Assembly: GCA_024626585.2 (NCBI GenBank)
Contig: JANKJI020000004.1
Location: forward strand, 167,013,270 to 167,049,335
DNA from: Ginkgo biloba
Lineage: Eukaryota; Plantae; Ginkgophyta
DNA length: 36,066 nt
Direction of reading: 5' to 3'
Below are positions 3,384 through 31,729 of this stretch, in pieces. A program made the position numbers and the translations under genes. The notes below the pieces were generated by a model. That model was not told the origin of the DNA, did no database searches, and was given only the letters and a program-made list of their open reading frames with translations. The first letter of the stretch is position 1. Each line of letters starts with the position of its first letter.

Positions 3384-3935
3384 ACACATGATGGCAGCCA
3401 AAGGATTCTCAAATACATAAAAGAAAAAGTGGATTATGGTGTTTGGTATTCAAGTACAAGGACACAAATTTTCAGTTAATAGGATAGTCAGATGTAGATT
3501 GGACTGGCTCCTTAGAAGCTAGAAAATCAACCACAAGTTACATGTTTCATTTGGGTTGAAGCACAATTTCATGGTGCAACAAGAAACAACACACAATAGC
3601 ACTTTCTTCTACAGAGACCAAGTATAGAGTGATAATGACAACAGTACGAGAAACAGTCTAGCTACATAGAGTTTTGGAGGACCTTCATTGCAAACAAATA
3701 GTTCCTACAATTTTATGGTGTGACAATCAAAGTGTTTTGAAGATGGAAAAGAACCCAATTTTTCACAAGAGAACCAAACATATTGAGATTGATTGCCACT
3801 ACATCAGGGAATGGGTTTTAGTGGAGCAGATCAAGTTGAGTACTGTTCTTCAAATGACCAATCAACAAATATCCTCACCAAACCATTGGTGAAAGACAAG
3901 TTTGAAAAACACAGATTGTCTCTAGGTGTATTAAA
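3384..3935 (+). pseudogene. Ty1/Copia RT C-terminus / RNase H remnant
   Basis: SDVDWTGSLEARKSTTSYMFHLG..ISWCNKKQHTIALSSTETKY..LWCDNQSVLKMEKNPIFHKRTKHIEIDCHYIRE..ILTKPL, the canonical Copia RNase H motif series, with stops and a frameshift. Confidence 0.95.
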
Positions 3936-12713: not shown

Positions 12714-13971
12714 CTTAAGATGCTTTGTCCTCAAAGCATTGTTGTCGAAGTTGAGGACTTTTTTGGAAAATTACTTTGGACTCCAAGAACCATCTTCTAA
12801 GAGTAAACCTTGCCATTTAATTAAAAACTCTCAAATTGTGATGGAGTGTAATTGCTTTTCTCGTATCTATAGGATATATTCTAGAATCACCACTAATCTT
12901 CCTTCTTTGTTGGGTATGAAAATTCTAATTATGTGCTTGCTCAGATATCGGTTATAAAAATGAGGGTTGTGTCTTTTGTTATGAGATCTTTTTTACATTA
13001 TTGTCTTATTTAATGGACATCATTTATCTTGGAATTCATCAAATACATCTTTTAATTTGGGGTCCTCCGATGTATCTGCTGTAATTTTTACTTGCATAGA
13101 AAAGAGTTGAATTGCCATCTCTAATTGTCTTCATAATTCCTTCTACTTTCACAACTCCTTCATTTTGTGTGAAGATAACAAGTGTGTTGCAGGGGGGGGT
13201 AAGGCCTTGTAATATGATGTTTTGTCCCTCGTGACTATAACACCGTGCTAAGTGTACTTAACCATTGTCTCTCGAGAACCACATCTACATCGACTTTCAT
13301 CACAAAGAAATCTTCTTGTAGTCTCTAGTCTTACGAGGCATGTTATTGCTAAAATGGACATTTGTGAAGTTTCTTCTTCCATGATAAGAAGTTCTCCTAT
13401 AGGAGGTTCAATATTGGATGTATATGTGCCATGATGATCTTATGGTTCTAATACTAAGGAATACAACTAACTTGGTTTGCATGTGTGACCATCTCCTAAT
13501 TTATCCTTGAACCAATAACATAACCCTTTTTCCTAAGTTTTAATTGTTCTTGGCATGATAATATTACTTTTGTACCTTGGGCATTATTTATTTCCTTTAG
13601 AGTAAGAGACCTTGCCTCGCTTCTTTTATACTTGTTATCTTTTGATGCTCTCGGAGGATATAGTGTTCCTGGGTATTCAGAAGACCTATACCTAGACATT
13701 CTTTTCCCAAAATGAATATATTTTCCTAGCCTTAGATTGTAAGGCTTGATATTTTACTTCAAAAGATTGTGCTAGTTCTATGGCTATTGTGAGATCGATT
13801 GGTCATTGTGCCATAACATCCACCTTTATTTCAATTTGTAACCCACCAATAAACAATTCAACTTGTTGCTCGTGTGAAAGGATGGGCACCTTATAAGCTA
13901 ATTGTGTGAAGGTGTTACGATACTCAACAACACTTCCTATCAGTGGTAATTTACATAGTTAAGCAAAGTAA
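12714..13971 (-). mobile_element. Non-autonomous chromovirus derivative, piece B: gag C-half, partly deleted protease, linker, GPY/F, chromodomain
   Basis: GSVVEYRNTFTQLAY..QVELFIGGLQIEIKVDV..PIDLTIAIELAQSFE (gag); LKLRKKG knuckle region; DFFVMKVDVDVVLERQWLSTL (protease C-terminus); GQNIILQGL; ..EFLIKWQGLLLEDGSW (chromodomain). Homologous to pieces A and C. Confidence 0.9.
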
Positions 13972-19819: not shown

Positions 19820-20502
19820 GCCAGAGATAGATTATTGGTGGAAGTGGTGGCTTTGGTATCAGAGCCACATATGTGGCTCGTGGAGGAAGTGGTTGAAGAA
19901 AGTTAAGGAAATATTGAAAAGTTGTTGGTGGCATTGAAGAGGAATTGAATATGGCAAGGAGAGTTGCCAAAGGTGGGTTAGAAACAACTAACAAATAGTA
20001 GGAAACCTTGAAGAGACAAATGACAGAATTAGAGGAGGAAGAATGGAGGTATAGACAGAAGAAAAGGTGCCAAAATATGTTGAAGAAATTATACAAGCAT
20101 GAAGGAAAAGAAGGAATAAAAATGCTTATGAAAAGGGTGAAAATGTGAATGGAGTAGGATGAGGCACTAAGCGAAGAGATAACATATGATTATGAGGACC
20201 CAGTTGGGGATGATGATGAAACAAGTGATATGGATAGCCAATGGATACTCCGTGAAAAGGAGGTGTTGAATGTAACCATGCTTGAGGATAAGCATGAGAG
20301 AGATGTGGAAATTCATCAAGCGAATGACATTGGTGTACTAATGGAGGGGATGAGTGTAGTCACCATAGATGAGCATATGTAAGGATATAACAGAGAAAAG
20401 TTACAAAAAGTTATGAATGGAGAAGGAAAAAATTATTTAGATGCAACAAGTAGAGCAATAGAAAATTTATTACAGGTACAAGAGAATGAGGGGTTGACAA
20501 AT
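19820..20502 (+). mobile_element. LTR-element internal region: tRNA-Met PBS plus decayed acidic coiled-coil ORF (homologue of the 29594 ORF)
   Basis: TGGTATCAGAGCC at 19854-19866. From 19951, MARRVAKGGLETTNK**ETLKRQMTELEEEEWRYRQKKRCQNMLKKL aligns ungapped with MVRLVTRERVVARMRELEALRRKVEALEEEERRIRQEERIQSILRKL. Confidence 0.75.
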
Positions 20503-23290
20503 TGACGTAGGTTGAAGGGGTGGATAGGCGACTGGAAGCTTGCTTCAATGAACTCTCTTCGAATGTTCCACTCTAAGTTTCCAACCCCCACCTACCTTCT
20601 AAGACCTTTTATACACAAATGTACCCTTGTCTACGATGTCAATGAGCACCCAATCTTATCATGCTAGCAACAATGCTACTGACAACCCACAGGAATAAAG
20701 TAGTCACAAATAAAACTATTTGATTTTTTTCTACATAGAAAAACAATTTAAACCAATAGTGATACAACAACATGATTTTTTTCAACTGGAGAAACCCTCT
20801 CAAGGAATAAAACTCCACCATCGCATTAACAAGTAATCATTTTCACACATTACAACCAATTTTATAGCCTCTAAGGCCACCCTCACTAATGGAGGTGAGG
20901 GTGGCCTTAGAGGCTAGGTAATTACAGTTTATCAACAGAATTCTAGAATGGGCCACTGCTCATAATTCCCTTGAGCTGCCACCCTCGGGATGTCTTCTCG
21001 GCACTTCTTTGCTACAGTGGCTTCGATGGACTCTTCAGTGCCTCCACTTCATCAAACATTGGACGAAATCACGTCACCCACTCTTAAGCTTCCTCCCTTT
21101 GCGTTCTGCTCACTTTCTCAACCTCTATTAGATGTTATGTTTTCCTCTGGCTCGCTCTCTCAACTCTCCTTCAAATAGTTAACCACTTCAACACTTTTGG
21201 AAGCCAACCCACTGGCAAACCTTCAACTAGAAAACTCAACACTCCAACCATCCAACCAACTAGTGAACCCCTTCTCCAACTACGCCTTGGCTTTTATGCT
21301 TAAGCCTCAATGCTTCAAACGACTAGGGTTCAATGCTCATCTTTAAATCTAATGGATCAATTAGGTGACCATTTACTACTTTCAATGAATCTTATCCCTT
21401 AATGCCCTACAATGGCCTTCTGCAACTTCTTATGGTCTAGGTTCATTCTCCATAACTACTTGGTAGATGTAATACTAATGGTGCCACCTCCATCAATAAT
21501 CACCCATGTGTGTGTTAATAATGGTCCTCAATGGATGTGCCCCAAAACCCTATTTTATTATTTGTTAGGTCTATAGAGTCAAAATTTTGAATGGGCATGA
21601 CTCATAAGGGAAACCTAACTCCCTGATCTCCTGATATATTACTTTGTCATCGGGTCTGCCAACTCAGATGTCCATAGGGAAGTTGGATTCAATTCACTCT
21701 AGAAACTTTGATACCCTAATCTCTTGATATTTAAAGCCTACCTCCATTTTCATCACTTATCTTTCTTTATTTTTATTTTTATTTTTTTCCTTTTGGTCCA
21801 CAACTGGGTTATACAAATTATTGGGTCCATGGTTTTATGATCCTACCTTCTAATGTCTCAAGTTCCACCCCTAATCCTTTGATTCCCTGATAGCTAATTA
21901 AACATAGTTTATAACTCATTGAGTTTTTAGGTTTATATAAGGTGTAACCTAGTTGGTTAAGAGGCCCAAACCCTTGATCACCTAAAAGTCCAATGCCCGA
22001 TCATCTGACTTGTTGCTTCACTGTTACGCGTAGTCTTCAAAGACTCTCAGAACTGGATTTCATAAGAAGTTAGGTCTATAGGATTTTTAAGTGGTGTAAC
22101 TTCAATTCTAGTGACATGGGGCCTAATTCATCGATGATGTCAATTCTCTTCCTTTTTTAACTTACTAACGATGTTGGCCTCCANNNNNNNNNNNNNNNNN
22201 NNNNNNNNNNNNNNNNNNNNNNNNNNNNNNNNNNNNNNNNNNNNNNNNNNNNNNNNNNNNNNNNNNNNNNNNNNNNNNNNNNNAGGTGTCTAGTCAAGGG
22301 TGTTGAACCTCTGCCTCTATGAATTTTCTCAACCAATAACCTCTACAGTCAGCTACGACACTTGTCAACTCCTTCCTCAATCCCTCTAGGTAGGCACTCA
22401 CCCCAAACTCTATAATTTCTTTTTTTTTGGTTTGCTTCCAATGCTTCTACAGACACCTCAGTCCTAGGTGACTGATTCACCTTGTAATCTAGCTCAAGGG
22501 GTTTGAATCACTCATCTCACCTTCGAACCTCACAACTAAATCTCATAAAATCACACTTTAACTGGCTAGCAACCCTTTAACAATATGAATCAACACTTCC
22601 ACCAGCCAATAACCCACTAAATTTCCCTTCTATACTCAATTTATCTCCTCTTCTCTCTTCACCCTGAATATCATTCTTGGACTATGTCACTCCCTACTCT
22701 TTTGCGCATGGGTTTTTTTATGCTTGAGATTCAATGTACACCAATGACTAGGTTTCAACATCCCCTTTATCTCCAATGAATTTATTAGGTGATAATTTAC
22801 TTCGCTTAATAATGTTTAGACCTTAATGTCCTATAATGGACTTCTATGACTTCTCTTGTTCCAAGTTCATTCTTCACAGCCACTTGGTAGGTGCAATACT
22901 AAATGGTGCCACCTCTAGCAATAATCGACCATGCATGTATTAATAACAACTCTCGAAGGCTATGCCCAAAACTTTGTTTCAATCCTTGTCGAGTCCACGT
23001 AGTGAGAGTTTTAAAAAGGTGTAGGTGCAACTTACAACCACAACCTTGACTCCTTGATCTCCCGATCCTTCAATCCTTGATTAAACTCAATTTAATATCT
23101 TTGTCGGGTCTACAGGATTTATAAGCCTACCTTCCCATGTCTCGAGTTCCACCTTTGACCTTTCGATCCTCGATAGCCCAATTACCTTGGTAATTAATCC
23201 TTTTGACTTTGCTAGCACCTGACAACTTTGACCTGTGGCCAACTCCACGACGTCACACTTTAGACACACCATAGATTTGACCACTATACA
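20503..23290 (-). mobile_element. Long LTR-like repeat (possible solo LTR or two LTR pieces joined across a gap)
   Basis: TG..CA termini (tgacgtagg..accactataca). Near-matching 5-bp flanks caaat/taaat. ~21296-21560 recurs at ~22720-22990 and ~27265-27540. Non-coding. Confidence 0.55.
20865..20916. repeat. Perfect 22-bp inverted repeat with 8-nt loop
   Basis: tagcctctaaggccaccctcac-taatggag-gtgagggtggccttagaggcta. Confidence 0.97.
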
Positions 23291-26050
23291 TAAATATATA
23301 TAATCATACTTCTCGCTATATACATACTATTCCACCATCTACAGCCAAAAGTGGGCACACTATCAGGGTGCCACCGTGATGCTCCTGCATCATCCTCTCT
23401 TGGTCATGGACCACTTCCTCTCTTTGGATCTAGATCTCAACTAAAGTCTTCTTCCATGAAATCGAGTGCCATAACCACATGCTTTAGCTGACTTGGTCTC
23501 CCTTTGCTTCATACCTTGGAAATTCTTCTTTTCTCTGACCTCTTATTGGTCGCTCTCTTCTTGTCGTTCTTCCACCCATTGGCAAATTCTCTACTTAGGC
23601 TTTCACTTGCCACTATTTCATATGGATTTTTTGCATTTTACCCATGTGCCCCTCATTTCTCCTAACATGGCTCTTCTCCAACATCCTTTGCCTAGTACCT
23701 ATCATTGGCTCTTTCCTAAGCATTTCCACTATTTATGCCATCAAGGCATAGCGTGTTCCTATCGGATACACACTCCTCATAAGATGACTCATTGCCTAAG
23801 ATGCTTCCCCCTTATTATCAATCACCTTTTCCTTCCCTTTACTCGGTTGGTGCTCATCTTATCTCATGTCAGCTATCGACTTCTCTTTTGATTCAAATAA
23901 TACTTTCTATGCCAACAATCCTCTTGCCATGTTGACCTCCTTGGGTTTTGACTCTTCTGTCACATATCAGGGTAAATTTGCACGGCCTTCTCATGTCTGT
24001 TGTCGATCATCATTCCTCTTAGGGTATTCAATGGACATGTGACCTTCCTTGCCACATGCAAAATATCTAAGCGATCTTCTCTCATGTGGTGCTCTGTCCA
24101 ACCTCCTCTTATGGATGAATCCTTCTTAGCTTCTAGTTTGATCAACATTAGATTCTCCACGCGGTTGGGTAGCCCTATCGGAACCAAAATTTCAAAAATA
24201 CTCACACCTTCTATTATTTTCATCCCTTCGATTATTTCCATCTTCCCATGGTTGTTCATCTCTTCTCTATCACCAAAANNNNNNNNNNNNNNNNNNNNNN
24301 NNNNNNNNNNNNNNNNNNNNNNNNNNNNNNNNNNNNNNNNNNNNNNNNNNNNNNNNNNNNNNNNNNNNNNNNNNNNNNNNNNNNNNNNNNNNNNNNNNNN
24401 NNNNNNNNNNNNNNNNNNNNNNNNNNNNNNNNNNNNNNNNNNNNNNNNNNNNNNNNNNNNNNNNNNNNNNNNNNNNNNNNNNNNNNNNNNNNNNNNNNNN
24501 NNNNNNNNNNNNNNNNNNNNNNNNNNNNNNNNNNNNNNNNNNNNNNNNNNNNNNNNNNNNNNNNNNNNNNNNNNNNNNNNNNNNNNNNNNNNNNNNNNNN
24601 NNNNNNNNNNNNNNNNNNNNNNNNNNNNNNNNNNNNNNNNNNNNNNNNNNNNNNNNNNNNNNNNNNNNNNNNNNNNNNNNNNNNNNNNNNNNNNNNNNNN
24701 NNNNNNNNNNNNNNNNNNNNNNNNNNNNNNNNNNNNNNNNNNNNNNNNNNNNNNNNNNNNNNNNNNNNNNNNNNNNNNNNNNNNNNNNNNNNNNNNNNNN
24801 NNNNNNNNNNNNNNNNNNNNNNNNNNNNNNNNNNNNNNNNNNNNNNNNNNNNNNNNNNNNNNNNNNNNNNNNNNNNNNCTCTTGTTATTCGCTCTCTTCT
24901 TGTCAGTCTGTCGCCCATTAGTGATTTCTCCACTTGGGATTTCACTCGCCACTATTTCATATGAATTTTTGGGATTCTACCCCTATGCCCCTCATTTCTC
25001 CTGACATGTCTCTTCTCCAACATTCTTTTCTTATTCCCTGTCGTTGGCTCTTTCTTGAGATTTTCTACTACTCCTGCCATAAAGGCATAACATGTCCTCA
25101 TTGGATGCATACTCCTCATAGGCTGACTTATTGCCTAAGATGTTCCCCCCTTATCATCAATCACCTTTTCCTTCCCTTTACTCGATCGGTGCTCATCTTG
25201 GCTCACATCAGTTGTTGACTTCTCTTCTGATGCCAATAACACTTTTTATGCTAACAATCCTCTTGCCATGCCGACCTCCTTGGGTTTTGACTCTTCTATC
25301 ATATATCAGGCTAAATTTGCATCGCCTTCTCATGTATGTTGTTAATCATAATTCCTCTTAGGGTATTCAAATGACATATGACCTTCCTTGCCACATGTAA
25401 AACATCTAGGAAATATTCTCTCATATGGTTCTCTGTCCAACCTCCTCTCATGGATGAATCCTTCTTGGCTTCTAGTGTGATCAACATTAGATTCTCCACA
25501 TGGTCGGGTAGCCCTGTCAAAAACAAAATTTCAAAAATTCTCATGCCTTCTATTATTTTCATCCCTCTAGTTATTTCCATCTTCCTATGGTTGGTCATCT
25601 CTTCTCTATTGCCAAAATGATATCGATGCACTTCTAATGAAGGGTCTTTTTCTTGCATGTTGAGATAATTTTTCNNNNNNNNNNNNNNNNNNNNNNNNNN
25701 NNNNNNNNNNNNNNNNNNNNNNNNNNNNNNNNNNNNNNNNNNNNNNNNNNNNNNNNNNNNNNNNNNNNNNNNNNNNNNNNNNNNNNNNNNNNNNNNNNNN
25801 NNNNNNTTATGAATGGACAATCTATAAAATTCATCAATGTACTCGGGTATATTCTTTTCCCTTTGCCTTAAATTTTGAAATTCTTTAAATAGTCTTTGGT
25901 TGTAGTTTGACTATAAGAATTTTCCCTTAAATTTCTCGACCATCCTCTGCCATGATTGCATTTTCTCCTTGTATCTCTAGACTCTATCTTTCTGTAGATG
26001 TTCCTACCAAATTGCAGCATGTCCCTTCAATCTTGTGTAGGTGAACCTTA
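23291..26050 (-). mobile_element. CRM-like Gypsy non-autonomous (TR-GAG-like) element: gag, duplicated zinc-knuckle block, PPT and LTR start; no RT/RH/INT seen
   Basis: 25810-26050 reads RFTYTRLKGHAAIW..SWQRMVEKFKGKFL..LFKEFQNLRQ..EYIDEFYRLSI (Retrotrans_gag). Knuckles CFTCGKEGHMSFEYP (25361-25404) and YFACGKEGHMSIEYP (24022-24065). PPT-like gatggtggaatag then TG at ~23324. Confidence 0.8.
23540..25616. repeat. Direct duplication of a ~740-bp block (23540-24278 vs 24880-25616) separated by an N gap
   Basis: Colinear alignment by eye with scattered transitions. Confidence 0.9.
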
Positions 26051-26245
26051 NNNNNNNNNNNNNNNNNNNNNNNNNNNNNNNNNNNNNNNNNNNNNNNNNN
26101 NNNNNNNNNNNNNNNNNNNNNNNNNNNNNNNNNNNNNNNNNNNNNNNNNNNNNNNNNNNNNNNNNNNNNNNNNNNNNNNNNNNNNNNNNNNNNNNNNNNN
26201 NNNNNNNNNNNNNNNNNNNNNNNNNNNNNNNNNNNNNNNNNNNNN

Positions 26246-26296
26246 TAAATATATATGTATGTATGTATATATGTATGTATGTATGTATATAAATGT
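26246..26296. repeat. (TATG)n/(TA)n microsatellite
   Basis: atatatgtatgtatgtatatatgtatgtatgtatgtatata. Confidence 0.95.
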
Positions 26297-27700
26297 GATG
26301 TAGGAGGGGTTGACGACAAATTCTCTTGGCGCTATGCGCTAACCTCCACCCGTGTCGCCACATGATCTGCCTTCTAGGATCTCTGCAAATGGACTCACTG
26401 ACATAGTCGGTGCACTCCCAACAATGAGCCTTTAGTCTGTCCTGTCAGCGATGATTTCATGGACAACTCATAGGAAGTTCAAAACACAAAATAAAATTAT
26501 TATTTTCACCATAGAAAATAAAATGATTAATACACCAGTGAATAGTAGANNNNNNNNNNNNNNNNNNNNNNNNNNNNNNNNNACTAAAAAAACCCTCTCG
26601 GGGAATAAAACTCTAAATGCATTAGTAATCAATAATTCTCTAATACCTTAGTCTCTAAGGCTCTTCCTTACTGTCAGAGGGCCAATACAAATAATGTCAC
26701 ACAAATTAACTCAATGGGCCATTGGCCCTATTCCTCTGAGTTGCCTCCCTCAGTGTTCTGCTCGATTTTCCTCTGTTAATGTGGCTCTGGCAGACTCTTC
26801 AAAGCCTGCACTTCATCAAACACTATATGAAATATCCTTCGTCCTCCTGAGTTGCATCCCTTGATGTTTTGCTCAATTTTTCTCTGTTAATGTGGCTTCA
26901 ACAAACTCTTCAATGCCTCCCTTTCATCAAACACTAGACAGAACCTCCTTCGTCCCCTTGAGTTGTTTCCCTTAGCATTCTGCTTAGTTTTCCTCTATCA
27001 ATATGGCTTTGGTGAACTCTTCAATGCCTCCACTTCATTAAACACTAGACATAATCATGCTGCCCACTCTTGAGCTGCCTCCCTCAACATTTTGTTCATT
27101 CTCTCAACCTCTGTTGGTTGCTATGTTGCCCCTTGGCTCATTCTCTCAACTCTCCTTTAACCAGTTAACCACTGTAAGGCTTCTAGTAGCCAACCCACTA
27201 GCAAACTCAACACTCCAAACAACCAACCAACTAGTGAACACCTTCTCCAACTACATCCTAGATTTTATTCTTGAGCTTCAACACTTCAAACGGATAGGGT
27301 TCAACGTTCATCTTTGATTCCAATGACTTTGTTAGGTGACCATTTACTGCTTTCAATGACTCTTGGCCCTTAATGCTATGCAATGGCCTTTTGCAACTTC
27401 TTCTAGTCTAGGTTCATTCTCCATAGTCGTCTAGTAGGTGAAAAGCTAATGGTGGCACTACCTGCAATAATCGCCTATGCATTTGTTAATAATGGTTCTC
27501 GAATATTGTGCCCAAAACTCTATTTCAATCCTTGTTGGGTCTATGTAGTTAGACTTGTGGAAAGGTGTAGGCATGACTTATAATNNNNNNNNNNNNNNNN
27601 NNNNNNNNNNNNNNNNNNNNNNNNNNNNNNNNNNNNNTATTGGGTCTATGGGGTTTATAAGCCTACCTTCCCATGTCTTGAGTGCCACCTCTGACCTTCC
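26297..27700 (-). mobile_element. Further copy of the long LTR-like repeat
   Basis: Begins tgatgtagg (cf. tgacgtagg at 20503). aaaccctctc..gaataaaactc and the following ~900 bp align to 20790-21600. 27637-27700 aligns to ~23100-23165. Confidence 0.65.
26737..27100. repeat. Tandem repeat, ~111-bp unit, ~3.3 copies
   Basis: Unit starts tgag(t/c)tg..tccc at 26737, 26848, 26959 and 27071. Each full unit carries ctcttcaa(a/t)gcct..cttcat(c/t)aaacacta. Confidence 0.9.
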
Positions 27701-27704
27701 AAGT

Positions 27705-30650
27705 GAATTAAAGGCATTGGGTGAATGAAAATAGAGAGAGATGGAAAGGGCATGAGAATGGGCTCATGCATATTTTTGTTAGAAGGGGAGGATGATGCAA
27801 GAGTATCTCTCATTTTGGCATCTTGGACAAGTGAGTTTGGTGGTAGTGATTTTAGTGAGCTGGCAGGTCATTTTAGATGAGTAGGTCAAAGATGGTTTGA
27901 TTTTGGACAAATGGGTTGAGGGCCATGGAAGAATTCCCTAAATAAAGTATTATATGGAGTGACAAAAGAGATGGTGAAAGGTACCCAACTAACGGGCATG
28001 AAAATATGAACGAGAATGCGAAATCGTTTTGGTGAACAAGATTGGGAAGACCAATGAGTGGCTAAAGAAGTCTAGTGAATAGCCTAAAGGAGGCCTAGTG
28101 AACGACCTAAATGTTCTATNNNNNNNNNNNNNNNNNNNNNNNNNNNNNNNNNNNNNNNNNNNNNNNNNNNNNNNNNNNNNNNNNNNNNNNNNNNNNNNNN
28201 NNNNNNNNNNNNNNNNNNNTTCATAGAGAAGGTACAGATCAACATCAGTCTTTGTGCGAAGGCACATAAGAGATCAAGTCAAGTTTTCTTATTCTTGGCT
28301 AAGTTACAAAGCACACTATTGAAGTACATGCATTTCCATGGTACCGTGGATCCGCACATCCTAGGAGCACATATTTATGTGGTATCCGATTGATATGCAC
28401 GCGTTTACATAGTATTGGAGAAAATTGATAGATAATAAGTTGTACATACTATACAAGTTGACTGGACAACCTTATTCCAAAATATAGAGAATACATAAGA
28501 AGGGGAAAGAGTATTAGCCCCTTGGATTTGATCAAATCATTTTTTTGCATATTGACATCAAATCCTCCAACACTAAGCGGGTACATCGGTAAGCCAATGA
28601 GGTCCAAAGAAAAATAAGACATATTTGAGAAGAATACAGGTCTGTAGGAAAAAGAAGAGAGATCAAGGAAAAGAAGAGGAGGTCCAAAGAGGGATGCAAT
28701 AATAGCAAGTTGAGAGGGAGAAGGCTTGTAGATAGCAACAAACAAGTAGCAGGGTTGTGTGGAGGCCAAGGAGAAAAGAGAAGAGAAGGTCTGAGTAGTG
28801 GACCATAGAAAAAGAGAAGAAGAGTTAGGGTCCAAGAGGTGACCTTGCAGGGATTTGAGAAGCTAAATCATGGAGAATATAAGAAGGGTGTAGACTGTCG
28901 ACCGTGAGGCAACACCAAGGAACAGAGAAGAAGATTGTGGAAGTGGCATGGATTCCAAGTTGTGAAGACTATGTAACTCTTCAAGAAGGGAGCACTGGTA
29001 TATTATAACTGAAAACCCAACAAGGTATGAATGTATGTATTTCTTTTTTTTTTTTTTTGGGCTAGATGTAATGAATTGGTTTAGATTTAATGAAACGAAG
29101 TTGTTTATGATTTATGGATAATGCTTGTTTGTGGTGTTGCATAAATGGCCTGCATGGTAGTGAATGTATGTGTTGTGAATGGTTTGAAGTTCCATGTGGA
29201 ATGGTTGTTAAAAAGTGGACAAATGGCCTAAGGGTGTGAGCGAGCAGTCTAAAGACCAGTGGGAAAGCGGTGAAGACCTGTGAGCAAGATGGCTAAGGAA
29301 GAAAAGATCCTGGTAGGGATGAAAAATTAAGGATTAGAGGAGTCAGTTACATCATCATGGTATCAAAGTTGAGGAAGGGTGCATTGGTGAAGAAAGTCTA
29401 ATACCATCATCATGGTATCAGAGCCTAGGGTGGCTCATAGAGAAATTATTAGAGAGTTGCACCATGGAAGGGTGTTGCAGAGCCATGGAAGTCTTTTGAA
29501 TGAATTGGTGGAAGTGTGCAGTTGGTGAGTAGATCCTAGAGTGGTTGTGGAAGAATTATTATAGAAGGGAAGAAAATTCATAAGACCATAGAGATGGTGA
29601 GGCTAGTAACTAGAGAGAGAGTGGTTGCAAGGATGAGAGAGTTGGAAGCCTTGAGACGCAAGGTAGAAGCATTGGAAGAAGAAGAGAGGAGGATTAGACA
29701 AGAGGAAAGGATACAAAGCATATTGAGGAAATTATGCACATGGATGGAAGTAAGAAGAGAGAAAGAAGTAGAGGAAAGAGTAGAGGAATTTGTGGAGAAG
29801 ACTCTGAAAGAGCCTAAAGAAAGGGTTTTAGCTATTGAGCAACAATTGAGGAGTGAGGAGGAGCTCATGAGGAGTGTGCAAGTGGTGAGAGCATATGATG
29901 CTCAAGTGACTTGGGATGTGACAAGAGAAGTTGAGGAGATTCTGGAAGAGCCCGTACAAGGGCAAGGTGAGTAGGCACAAGGTGAGGTGCCAAGCAAAGT
30001 GGAGGAGCAATATGAAGCTCTGTATGAGGAGAGGAGTGAGGGCCTACATAAGGGGCATGAAAAATAAGTTTCTTGTGAGTAATTAGAGGAAGTGCAGTGC
30101 AAAGAATTGGGTGAGGAACCCATGGTGTAAGAACCCCAGCTGAAACTAAAATTCATGGTTGGCATGATGGAAGTTGAAGTGAGCAGACCAAGGGTGGTTT
30201 GAGAATTGGGTGCACATGTTGAGGATGGCGTCATGGAGGATAATGATGATAATGTGGAGGATGTTGTAGCAGATGGTGATATTAGAGATGACTGTGAACA
30301 AGCCAATGGAGCTTAAAATAAAAAATATGAGGTGGTTCTTAAAGAGGTTGGTGAAGTGAGCAAAGAGTCTAAGGAAGGGGCAACAAATGACTAAGAGGGG
30401 GCCGATGAGAATGTGCATGACAAGTTAGAGGCATTGGTGGAGAATTGAGAACATATGCAGGTAGAAGTGGAACATCAAATGGAAAGAAGTCACAGGAAGT
30501 ATGTGGCAAAGTGGAAGGATAATATTGCCATGAGAAAGCATTGGGATCATGGAAGGCAAATTAAAGGCATTAGGTGAATGAAAATATAGAGAGATGGAGA
30601 AGGACATGAGTAGGGGCTCATGCATAATTTTTGTAAGAAGGGGAATGCTA
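27705..30650 (+). mobile_element. Non-autonomous LTR element in tandem arrangement: end of internal region + PPT, LTR (27793-29357/29412), double PBS, ~1.25-kb internal region, PPT
   Basis: PPT agaaggggagga (27781-27792); LTR TGATG...CATCA; PBS TGGTATCAAAG (29358) and TGGTATCAGAGCC (29413). 27705-27790 is homologous to 30560-30645, which ends in PPT aagaagggga. Confidence 0.8.
29594..30650 (+). pseudogene. Decayed ORF: Glu/Arg-rich coiled coil, acidic linker, C-terminal chromodomain-like motif
   Basis: Open 29594-29974 (126 aa). The same frame continues, E/D-rich, through 8 in-frame stops to KLEALVEN*E..RKYVAKWKD (~30422-30520). After one frameshift it reads ESIGIMEGKLKALGE. Confidence 0.7.
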
Positions 30651-31729
30651 GTGACATAAATCCCCATTACATACTCGCTAACACGTGGTAGGAGAGAATT
30701 GTGCCAACAACTTTGATTTTTAAATTTAGTTTGACCCTTCAATTTAAAAGGAGGAAAAAAATGACCTCGATCCCTTCTACAATTAAGGGTCATGGTCGTA
30801 ATGTTGGGGTGGATTTGAGGTTAAAATTGGGAATGGAATTTAGGGTCAAAGTGGGTGGAAGGTGTCTTACAATGTTAAAATTTATGAGCTAGTCCAAGGG
30901 TCAAAATTTGGTAACGTTTCCTCTATTCTCCACCTTTATTACAAGCCTTGTATTGAGCACGATGATTTGGTTTGGCGAGTTACTAAAAAGATAAGTTAAT
31001 TTTTAAGGTGTGCAATTGTGAATTCTTAATCTCAACCATGAGTAAGGCNNNNNNNNNNNNNNNNNNNNNNNNNNNNNNNNNNNNNNNNNNNNNNNNNNNN
31101 NNNNNNNNNNNNNNNNNNNNNNNNNNNNNNNNNNNNNNNNNNNNNNNNATTCTCAACATACATTAGGGCATAGCTAGAACTAAGTGTCAAGAAAACTTTC
31201 TCCCTTTTAATTACGCAAAAGAACTTCCCACTATCGGGGTGATTACAAAAGCCATTGCTCCAACTCTAGCTTATCTTTTATGCAAAACTTTCCTCCAGAT
31301 ACAATAGGTTCCAACAACCCCCTTATTCTTTCAAAGTTATCATGTAAAGAAGAGCACCATCATCTAGTTCCATCTTATGGTCTCCATGAAAACCTAATAT
31401 GTTTTTAGCAACTTTCAACTTCATTTCTACCACTAATTCTATATCTTCTTCAAGAAGACTTTCCAAGGGCCATGAATCAATCTTGTTATAGAAAATAATA
31501 AGAGTATTTTTTATAAATATTGGTTTTATTCTATGAAATAAATTAGCCTATTGGGCAATACTATAACCACAATAACTAGATACATCCAAAAAGAATAAAA
31601 TCATTACTTTCAAATGGGAAAGGGAAGTAATGCTAAGCATTTTGATGGTATATGATCCAAAATACCAGGCGTATTAATGACCTGGTATCTTAAATACTTA
31701 TAATCAACGTGACTAATAAACAAATATTT

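Follow-up and report, generated by a model that had tools for sequence, protein, structure and literature searches.

A probable non-autonomous LTR retrotransposon relic of Ginkgo biloba with an orphan reading frame and an unsupported chromodomain

An LTR element whose short interior holds the relic of a reading frame is found in a stretch of 36,066 nt of Ginkgo biloba DNA, referred to here at its full length as the window. The element is probably a dead copy, truncated at its 3′ end, of a non-autonomous LTR family of LARD-like size and moderate repetition, which carries an orphan open reading frame and would have been moved in trans by a partner. The frame that begins with the ATG at 29594 is a coding relic, and the well-kept part of it is the N-terminal helix only. 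An initial annotation of this DNA had read the end of the frame as a chromodomain. A C-terminal chromodomain is not supported by the analyses described below, and the letters read as one most likely form a motif by chance within a charged helical tail. Elements of a similar kind are known from wheat and sugar beet, and Ginkgo biloba provides one more case.

The features of the element and of its relative in the same window are listed in Table 1. The TG of the 5′ LTR is at 27704–27705, and the boundary between the LTR and a flanking repeat is at about 27699–27703. The flanking repeat is unrelated, has other copies at 23106 and 21822, and stops matching exactly at the start of the 5′ LTR. At the other end of the LTR, immediately 3′ of the terminal ...CATCATCA (CA), is the primer binding site (PBS) TGGTATCAGAGC, a 12-mer that pairs with the 3′ end of the plant initiator tRNA-Met (tRNA-iMet). 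The degenerate copy of this LTR-end/PBS junction lies 55 nt upstream of the perfect one, and about 60 nt are absent at the duplication in some other copies of the family (joint 29393>29454). The interior extends from 29413 to 30556 and is free of N, as is the whole of 28220–31048. The interval between the PBS and the polypurine tract had been described as having no gap and a length of about 1.25 kb; the absence of a gap is borne out, but the length measured from the PBS to the 3′ LTR is about 1.13 kb.

Table 1. Coordinates of the element and of related features in the window
Feature	Position	Strand	Remarks
Diverged relative	19854..20505	+	PBS 19854, ATG 19951, 185-codon decayed frame; 6 stops vs 20 and 20 in the other frames
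5′ LTR (TG...CA)	27704..29412	+	~1.6–1.7 kb; contains assembly gap 28120–28219
Tandem duplication, LTR end + PBS	29358..29424	+	Pattern search; one degenerate copy (29358) and one perfect copy, TGGTATCAGAGC (29413–29424)
Intact N-terminal 126 codons	29594..29971	+	0 stops; the two alternative frames have 17 and 8
Decayed continuation (acidic tract, then basic/aromatic tail)	29972..30577	+	8 internal stops
Chromodomain-like letter motif	30500..30547	+	Y-V-A-K-W, second W ten residues on; read in the frame tail
Weak polypurine tract	30551..30556	+	GGAAGG, read from the sequence; too short to be diagnostic
3′ LTR stub	30557..30644	+	Cut at 30644/30645; 86-nt direct repeat 27706–27789 / 30559–30644, identity 90.7% (blastn, element vs window)

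A pairing of the LTRs is suggested by the match between the 86-nt 3′ stub and the start of the 5′ LTR, the remainder of the 3′ end having been lost; blastn detects no further LTR sequence downstream of 30644 in the window. In the same search the LTR has no second copy, and the element shows no similarity to the chromoviruses that are present in the window. The divergence of the 86-nt LTR pair (K ~0.10), at a rate of 1.3e-8 per site per year, translates into a very rough age of roughly 4 Myr.

The surrounding sequence is gap-rich, AT-rich plant DNA, and nearly all of it consists of nested repeat relics. Scans of the whole window with Rfam at the gathering threshold and with ARAGORN returned no Cassandra-type 5S, no retrozyme ribozyme and no tRNA, and these empty scans exclude Cassandra-type 5S, retrozyme and tRNA identities.

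The assembly gap falls inside the 5′ LTR and outside the reading frame. An error-free read contig of 732 nt from run X1 carries 28220–28542 in its letters 410–732, and its start matches the LTR-start repeat to about the equivalent of 27744; by simple arithmetic, the length of this contig implies that the gap contains approximately zero real letters. Error-free X1 contigs tile 28220–31045 except for two holes (16 nt and 5 nt) that lie away from the junctions of the element, and one contig of 583 nt crosses the break at 30645. As X1 is possibly the assembly's own sample, this tiling represents consistency with the reads and not independent confirmation.

The element belongs to a repeated family. 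Of the Logan contigs of two DNA runs from the same organism, 2333 and 3981 align to 28220–31048 at an identity of at least 85% (range 85–99%, with most contigs at 85–95%), and the summed word depth in bins of the reading frame is about 4–50 times the single-copy depth of ~80. Diverged contigs (85–87%) run unbroken over 29456–29781, which leads from the 5′ UTR to the N-terminus, and over 30354–30596, from the tail of the frame into the start of the LTR. No bin of the interior is left uncovered by diverged contigs, although no single contig spans the whole of it, and their tiling indicates that the short architecture is probably a family-wide property. Membership in a family had been proposed from the relative in the window, and it is confirmed by the repeated contigs together with that relative.

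The orphan frame runs from the ATG at 29594 to 30577, a length of 328 codons or 984 nt, with zero frameshifts. Internal stops are present at eight positions (29972, 30065, 30080, 30128, 30200, 30314, 30392 and 30446), and a terminal stop is at 30575. The chosen frame thus has 9 stops over the 328 codons, vs 27 and 37 in the two other frames. First-order Markov simulations predict 24 ± 4.7 stops, and the probability that the best frame would have 9 or fewer is 4e-4. In control frames of the LTR the counts are 23, 23 and 25, with no preference for any frame.

The two parts of the frame differ in how well they are kept. None of the first 126 codons is a stop, vs 8 of 201 in the remainder, a contrast of modest significance (one-sided P = 0.014–0.019) that persists when the count is restricted to codons that a single transition would turn into a stop. 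Over the 202 codons that follow codon 126, the chosen frame has 9 stops and the next frame has 10. Codon periodicity is nevertheless evident after 29972, with G at position 1 at 0.45–0.62 and A at position 2 at 0.46–0.55, and the chosen frame is preferred beyond codon 126 because of this periodicity only, the stop counts being nearly the same. The earlier description of a frame from 29594 that runs for ~309 codons without a frameshift and has 8 stops is borne out, but past codon 126 the stops do not separate the frames. A tblastn search of the X-masked frame against the window finds the frame itself only.

No known protein family was recognized in the frame. Pfam scans of six pieces of it gave no gag, protease, RT, integrase, Chromo or other family, the power of these scans being reduced as the pieces were the short segments between stops. 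There are no matches to Retrotrans_gag or zf-CCHC, and the CX2CX4HX4C motif is absent from the frame. The initial annotation was correct in reporting no recognisable gag, PR, RT, RH or INT: the Pfam scans reveal no such signature, and an interior of 1.13 kb is too short for pol. When the 126-aa N-terminus was compared by phmmer with 1.84 billion representative proteins, no relative was found; a word search was empty, and a search of the ESM Atlas by features gave no usable match. AlphaFold2 predicts the N-terminus to be one long charged helix that comprises residues 7–118 (pLDDT 92), and this model fits a coiled coil as well as it fits an isolated charged helix. RNA reads from run X21 map to a hyper-abundant 83-nt LTR repeat only and none map to the frame, which constitutes a weak test of expression. 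A polyA RNA run gave 0 reads, in a run that had no positive control.

The relative is interrupted at about 20530 by unrelated sequence. A diverged homologue of the N-terminus that follows a PBS and aligns without gaps had been noticed previously, and the homology is well founded. With the ATG at 19951 placed against that at 29594, the ungapped alignment has a BLOSUM local score of 87, vs 40 ± 6 for shuffles. The nucleotide identity of the two sequences is 56.7% in register vs 27–38% in shifted registers, and a local alignment of the DNA (29640–29757 with 19997–20113) has a z of ~10. Three pieces of the relative have no Pfam matches and show no gag signature over 650 nt, and a word search with its 74-aa piece is empty. 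A Nei–Gojobori comparison of the two, which is limited to 33–58 usable codons with saturated synonymous sites, gives a nominal pN of 0.29 vs a pS of 0.70 for codons 16–50 (33 codons used).

The read contigs also bear on the question of when the frame decayed. Among the majority differences listed between this copy and the others, one of the eight internal stops appears (30446–30448) and is private to this copy. The codon at 30128–30130 is a stop in both variants seen, and the other seven internal stops do not figure in the listed majority differences. As far as the listed differences go, they lean towards most stops being common to the copies of the family, and the visible stop pattern leans against an intact frame of ~340 aa during the period of amplification. 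The 17 in-frame differences that are listed fall at codon positions 1, 2 and 3 in the numbers 6, 2 and 9 (P = 0.075), a distribution that does not settle the matter of selection.

The proposed chromodomain was based on the letters YVAKWKD...HWD near the end of the frame. The letters are there, and the Y-V-A-K-W with a W at +10 has the canonical spacing of a chromodomain, but the positions of G and T/S are not kept. In the 72,128 residues of the six-frame translation of the window, a loose form of the motif is found only here and in a genuine chromovirus chromodomain (12827, minus strand). The motif arises in ~1e-5 of residue shuffles, a figure to be read as a post hoc test, and the motif was picked by a reader that was seeking it across very many windows. 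A check against the profile had been recommended along with the proposal, and its outcome is unfavourable: the 42-aa tail gives nothing against Pfam Chromo (PF00385) even at E ≤ 10, whereas a decayed and truncated 45-aa piece of the true chromovirus chromodomain in the same window, taken as a control, is detected with E = 0.013 and 15.9 bits. A phmmer search of the PDB with the tail gives 0 matches, and a BLASTP comparison with the chromodomain of the window, a weak test, extends over 12 residues only. AlphaFold2 models the tail as one helix (residues 2–41, pLDDT 85), where beta strands are expected of a chromodomain, although with a single sequence this is a weak test. No trace of GPY/F or of an integrase is found upstream of the motif. 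The chromodomain is accordingly regarded as unsupported.

The position of the motif raises the question of whether the element is a chromovirus derivative formed by internal deletion, in which the first codons of gag were fused to the last codons of the integrase and a worn chromodomain. Under such a scheme, the two ends would have been retained for no reason other than their overlap with packaging signals and with the polypurine tract. The ATG lies soon after the PBS and the motif just before the 3′ LTR, where chromoviruses have theirs, and the canonical spacing, together with the fact that the one other occurrence of the motif in the window is a true chromodomain, also points in this direction; furthermore, sugar-beet families with CHD remnants exist (PMC13570524). 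Such a derivation is unlikely, however, given that the Chromo profile does not detect the tail and does detect a true chromodomain of equal size that is also decayed, that the tail is predicted to be helical and that integrase or GPY/F traces are absent upstream. At the other end of the frame, the N-terminus matches no gag among the 1.84 billion proteins, and at the DNA level the element has no similarity to the chromoviruses of the window.

A fragment of a host gene might instead have been captured by, or template-switched into, a non-autonomous LTR element. The frame is similar to no TE protein, as would be expected of such an insert, and the capture of a foreign CDS is reported for RLG_Sabrina_NA5/6 (PMC9744471). 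But similarity to a host-like protein is equally lacking, both among the 1.84 billion representatives and in the word searches, and the frame of the relative starts at the same distance class from its PBS, which implies that the frame is old within the lineage. Capture from the host is quite improbable.

The initial annotation had favoured another explanation, namely that the ancestor encoded a stand-alone protein of ~340 aa, with coiled-coil, acidic and chromodomain parts, that perhaps tethered to chromatin or competed for the integration complex of a helper element. Three-periodic composition through all 984 nt without an indel is consistent with this, as are the one internal stop of eight that is private to this copy and the nominal excess of pS over pN (0.70 vs 0.29 in codons 16–50, from 33 codons with pS saturated). 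Against it, Pfam, the PDB search by phmmer, the control and the AlphaFold2 model all leave the chromodomain unsupported, and past codon 126 the stops do not distinguish the frame from the next one. Seven of the eight stops fall outside the majority differences listed and the stop at 30128 is in both variants, so that they are probably widely common; in addition the frame has no RNA reads, by a weak test. The stand-alone protein is therefore very unlikely, and is conceivable in a remote ancestor only. A slighter chance still is given to a lineage that once encoded a stand-alone protein unrelated to gag, in which a long coiled coil and an acidic tract accompanied a chromodomain-like reader of high divergence, and which steered the integration complex of a helper or competed with it. 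Finally, the assembly is rich in gaps and only one copy with this LTR is present in the window, yet an isolated deletion in a full-length element of the ordinary sort, or an artefact of assembly, is highly improbable in view of the error-free read contigs that tile 28220–31045, the many diverged contigs that cover all interior bins and cross the junction of tail and LTR, and the similar lack of gag signatures over 650 nt in the relative at 19854.

The preferred reading remains that of a truncated copy from a non-autonomous family moved in trans, with LTRs of ~1.6–1.7 kb and an interior of ~1.1 kb. Members of the family would be transcribed from the 5′ LTR, and the particles of an autonomous partner would take up the transcripts. 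Reverse transcription is presumed to be primed at the tRNA-iMet primer binding site, and the integrase of the partner would then insert the copies via the TG...CA ends. The orphan frame occupies the position where gag usually starts. By analogy with RLG_Sabrina_NA, it might specify a small helical accessory protein or one that replaces gag, or it may be a leftover with no role. The present copy can no longer move, given the truncation of its 3′ LTR and the breaks in its frame. Neither a second complete copy nor an autonomous partner with the same LTR ends and PBS is found within the 36-kb window.

The interiors of LARDs are described as non-coding. The Ginkgo biloba element resembles LARDs and TR-GAGs in its long LTRs, its short interior without pol and its presumed mobilization in trans, but differs from both in that its interior is a coding relic unrelated to gag. 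TR-GAG elements carry gag (PMC13570524); the lack of a gag profile, of CCHC and of relatives of the N-terminus speaks against a TR-GAG identity for the Ginkgo biloba element. The statement made earlier that known non-autonomous types are either non-coding or gag-bearing is out of date, as shown by the orphan CDSs of RLG_Sabrina_NA and the POL/CHD remnants of sugar beet.

In wheat, RLG_Sabrina_NA elements are non-autonomous, of the Ty3/gypsy type, present in high copy number and mobilized by partners (Wicker et al., 2021; PMC9744471). Seven variants have been described in which gag-protease is replaced by unique sequence for short proteins, four of these being without a homologue, and the capture of foreign CDSs has been reported for RLG_Sabrina_NA5/6 (PMC9744471). 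Both these and the Ginkgo biloba element are non-autonomous LTR elements with an orphan frame in the place of gag, a likeness of architecture and not a demonstrated relationship of sequence. They differ in that the wheat elements number hundreds to thousands of copies, whereas the Ginkgo biloba element has tens at an identity of at least 85% and is decayed.

RLG_Quinta, with RLG_Cereba as its partner, consists of GAG plus DUF1 and has an ORF that is partly of unknown function (PMC11302176). It is likewise a non-autonomous LTR element, and shares its PBS and LTR ends with a partner of the chromovirus type; Quinta has a clear GAG, however, whereas Pfam detects none in the Ginkgo biloba frame. 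In sugar beet, coding remnants were found in 43 of 115 non-autonomous families, 15 of which have pieces of POL that include chromodomains, and the authors stress that the size class of 1.5–4 kb has no name (PMC13570524). The Ginkgo biloba element is comparable to these families, which at 1.5–4 kb and above lie outside the definitions of TRIM and LARD and some of which keep POL/CHD without gag. The sugar-beet remnants can be recognized by domain profiles, in contrast to the Ginkgo biloba frame, where nothing is recognizable.

The result is mainly one of clean-up, in that the element proves to be an ordinary decayed non-autonomous LTR retrotransposon, and it also illustrates that a motif of six residues is insufficient for calling a chromodomain. 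Nonetheless, orphan frames that replace gag are a recurrent and unexplained feature of the non-autonomous retroelements of plants. If the 126-aa helix were found to be conserved and expressed in intact copies of the family, it would represent a further case for the contribution of small proteins to mobilization in trans.

In the 5′ LTR of the decayed element, the 100-N assembly gap at 28120–28219 appears to contain roughly no real nucleotides, a judgement based on an error-free 732-nt contig from DNA run X1. At 29340–29450, about 55 nt comprising the end of the LTR together with the primer binding site are duplicated in tandem; in some family copies (contigs of at least 85% identity) about 60 nt are missing at this place (joint 29393>29454). 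In place of the remaining 3′ LTR, 30645–30790 is itself a repeat, at about 26 times single-copy depth; it could represent a further element that inserted here, or else a partner in recombination.

Other retroelement remains are also present in the window (see table). The chromovirus remains are genuine; they include an integrase zinc-binding domain (E = 4e-8), a decayed chromodomain (E = 0.013) and, at 12827, a second chromodomain motif. Upstream of the Ty1/copia-like remains, an 11-mer at 2660 resembles a primer binding site. A repeat block rich in pyrimidines in the minus-strand sense (20540–27700) lies between the two related frames (ATG 19951 and ATG 29594); its two mutually related ORF pieces have no match in Pfam.

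Retroelement remains and repeat-block features in the window
Feature	Position	Strand	Remark
Chromovirus remains	585–719 and 1529–1873; 12827	minus	
Ty1/copia-like RNase H-end remains	3384–3900	plus	seen in translation
Internal duplication	21018–21525 ~ 27004–27496		block
Internal duplication	23540–23839 ~ 24879–25178		block
Tandem array, 111-nt	26736–27068		block
Two ORF pieces	23963–24277 and 25314–25673	minus	

An 83-nt stretch of the 5′ LTR, 28505–28587, is hyper-abundant, and its summed word depth reaches about 166,000 vs about 80 for single copy. Contigs depart from the window sequence by the hundreds at both of its flanks, and within the element RNA reads of run X21 fall on this stretch only. 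It contains a small hairpin (GGATTTGAT ... ATCAAATCC). The stretch may be an insert resembling a MITE or SINE, or it may be a motif that is shared widely.
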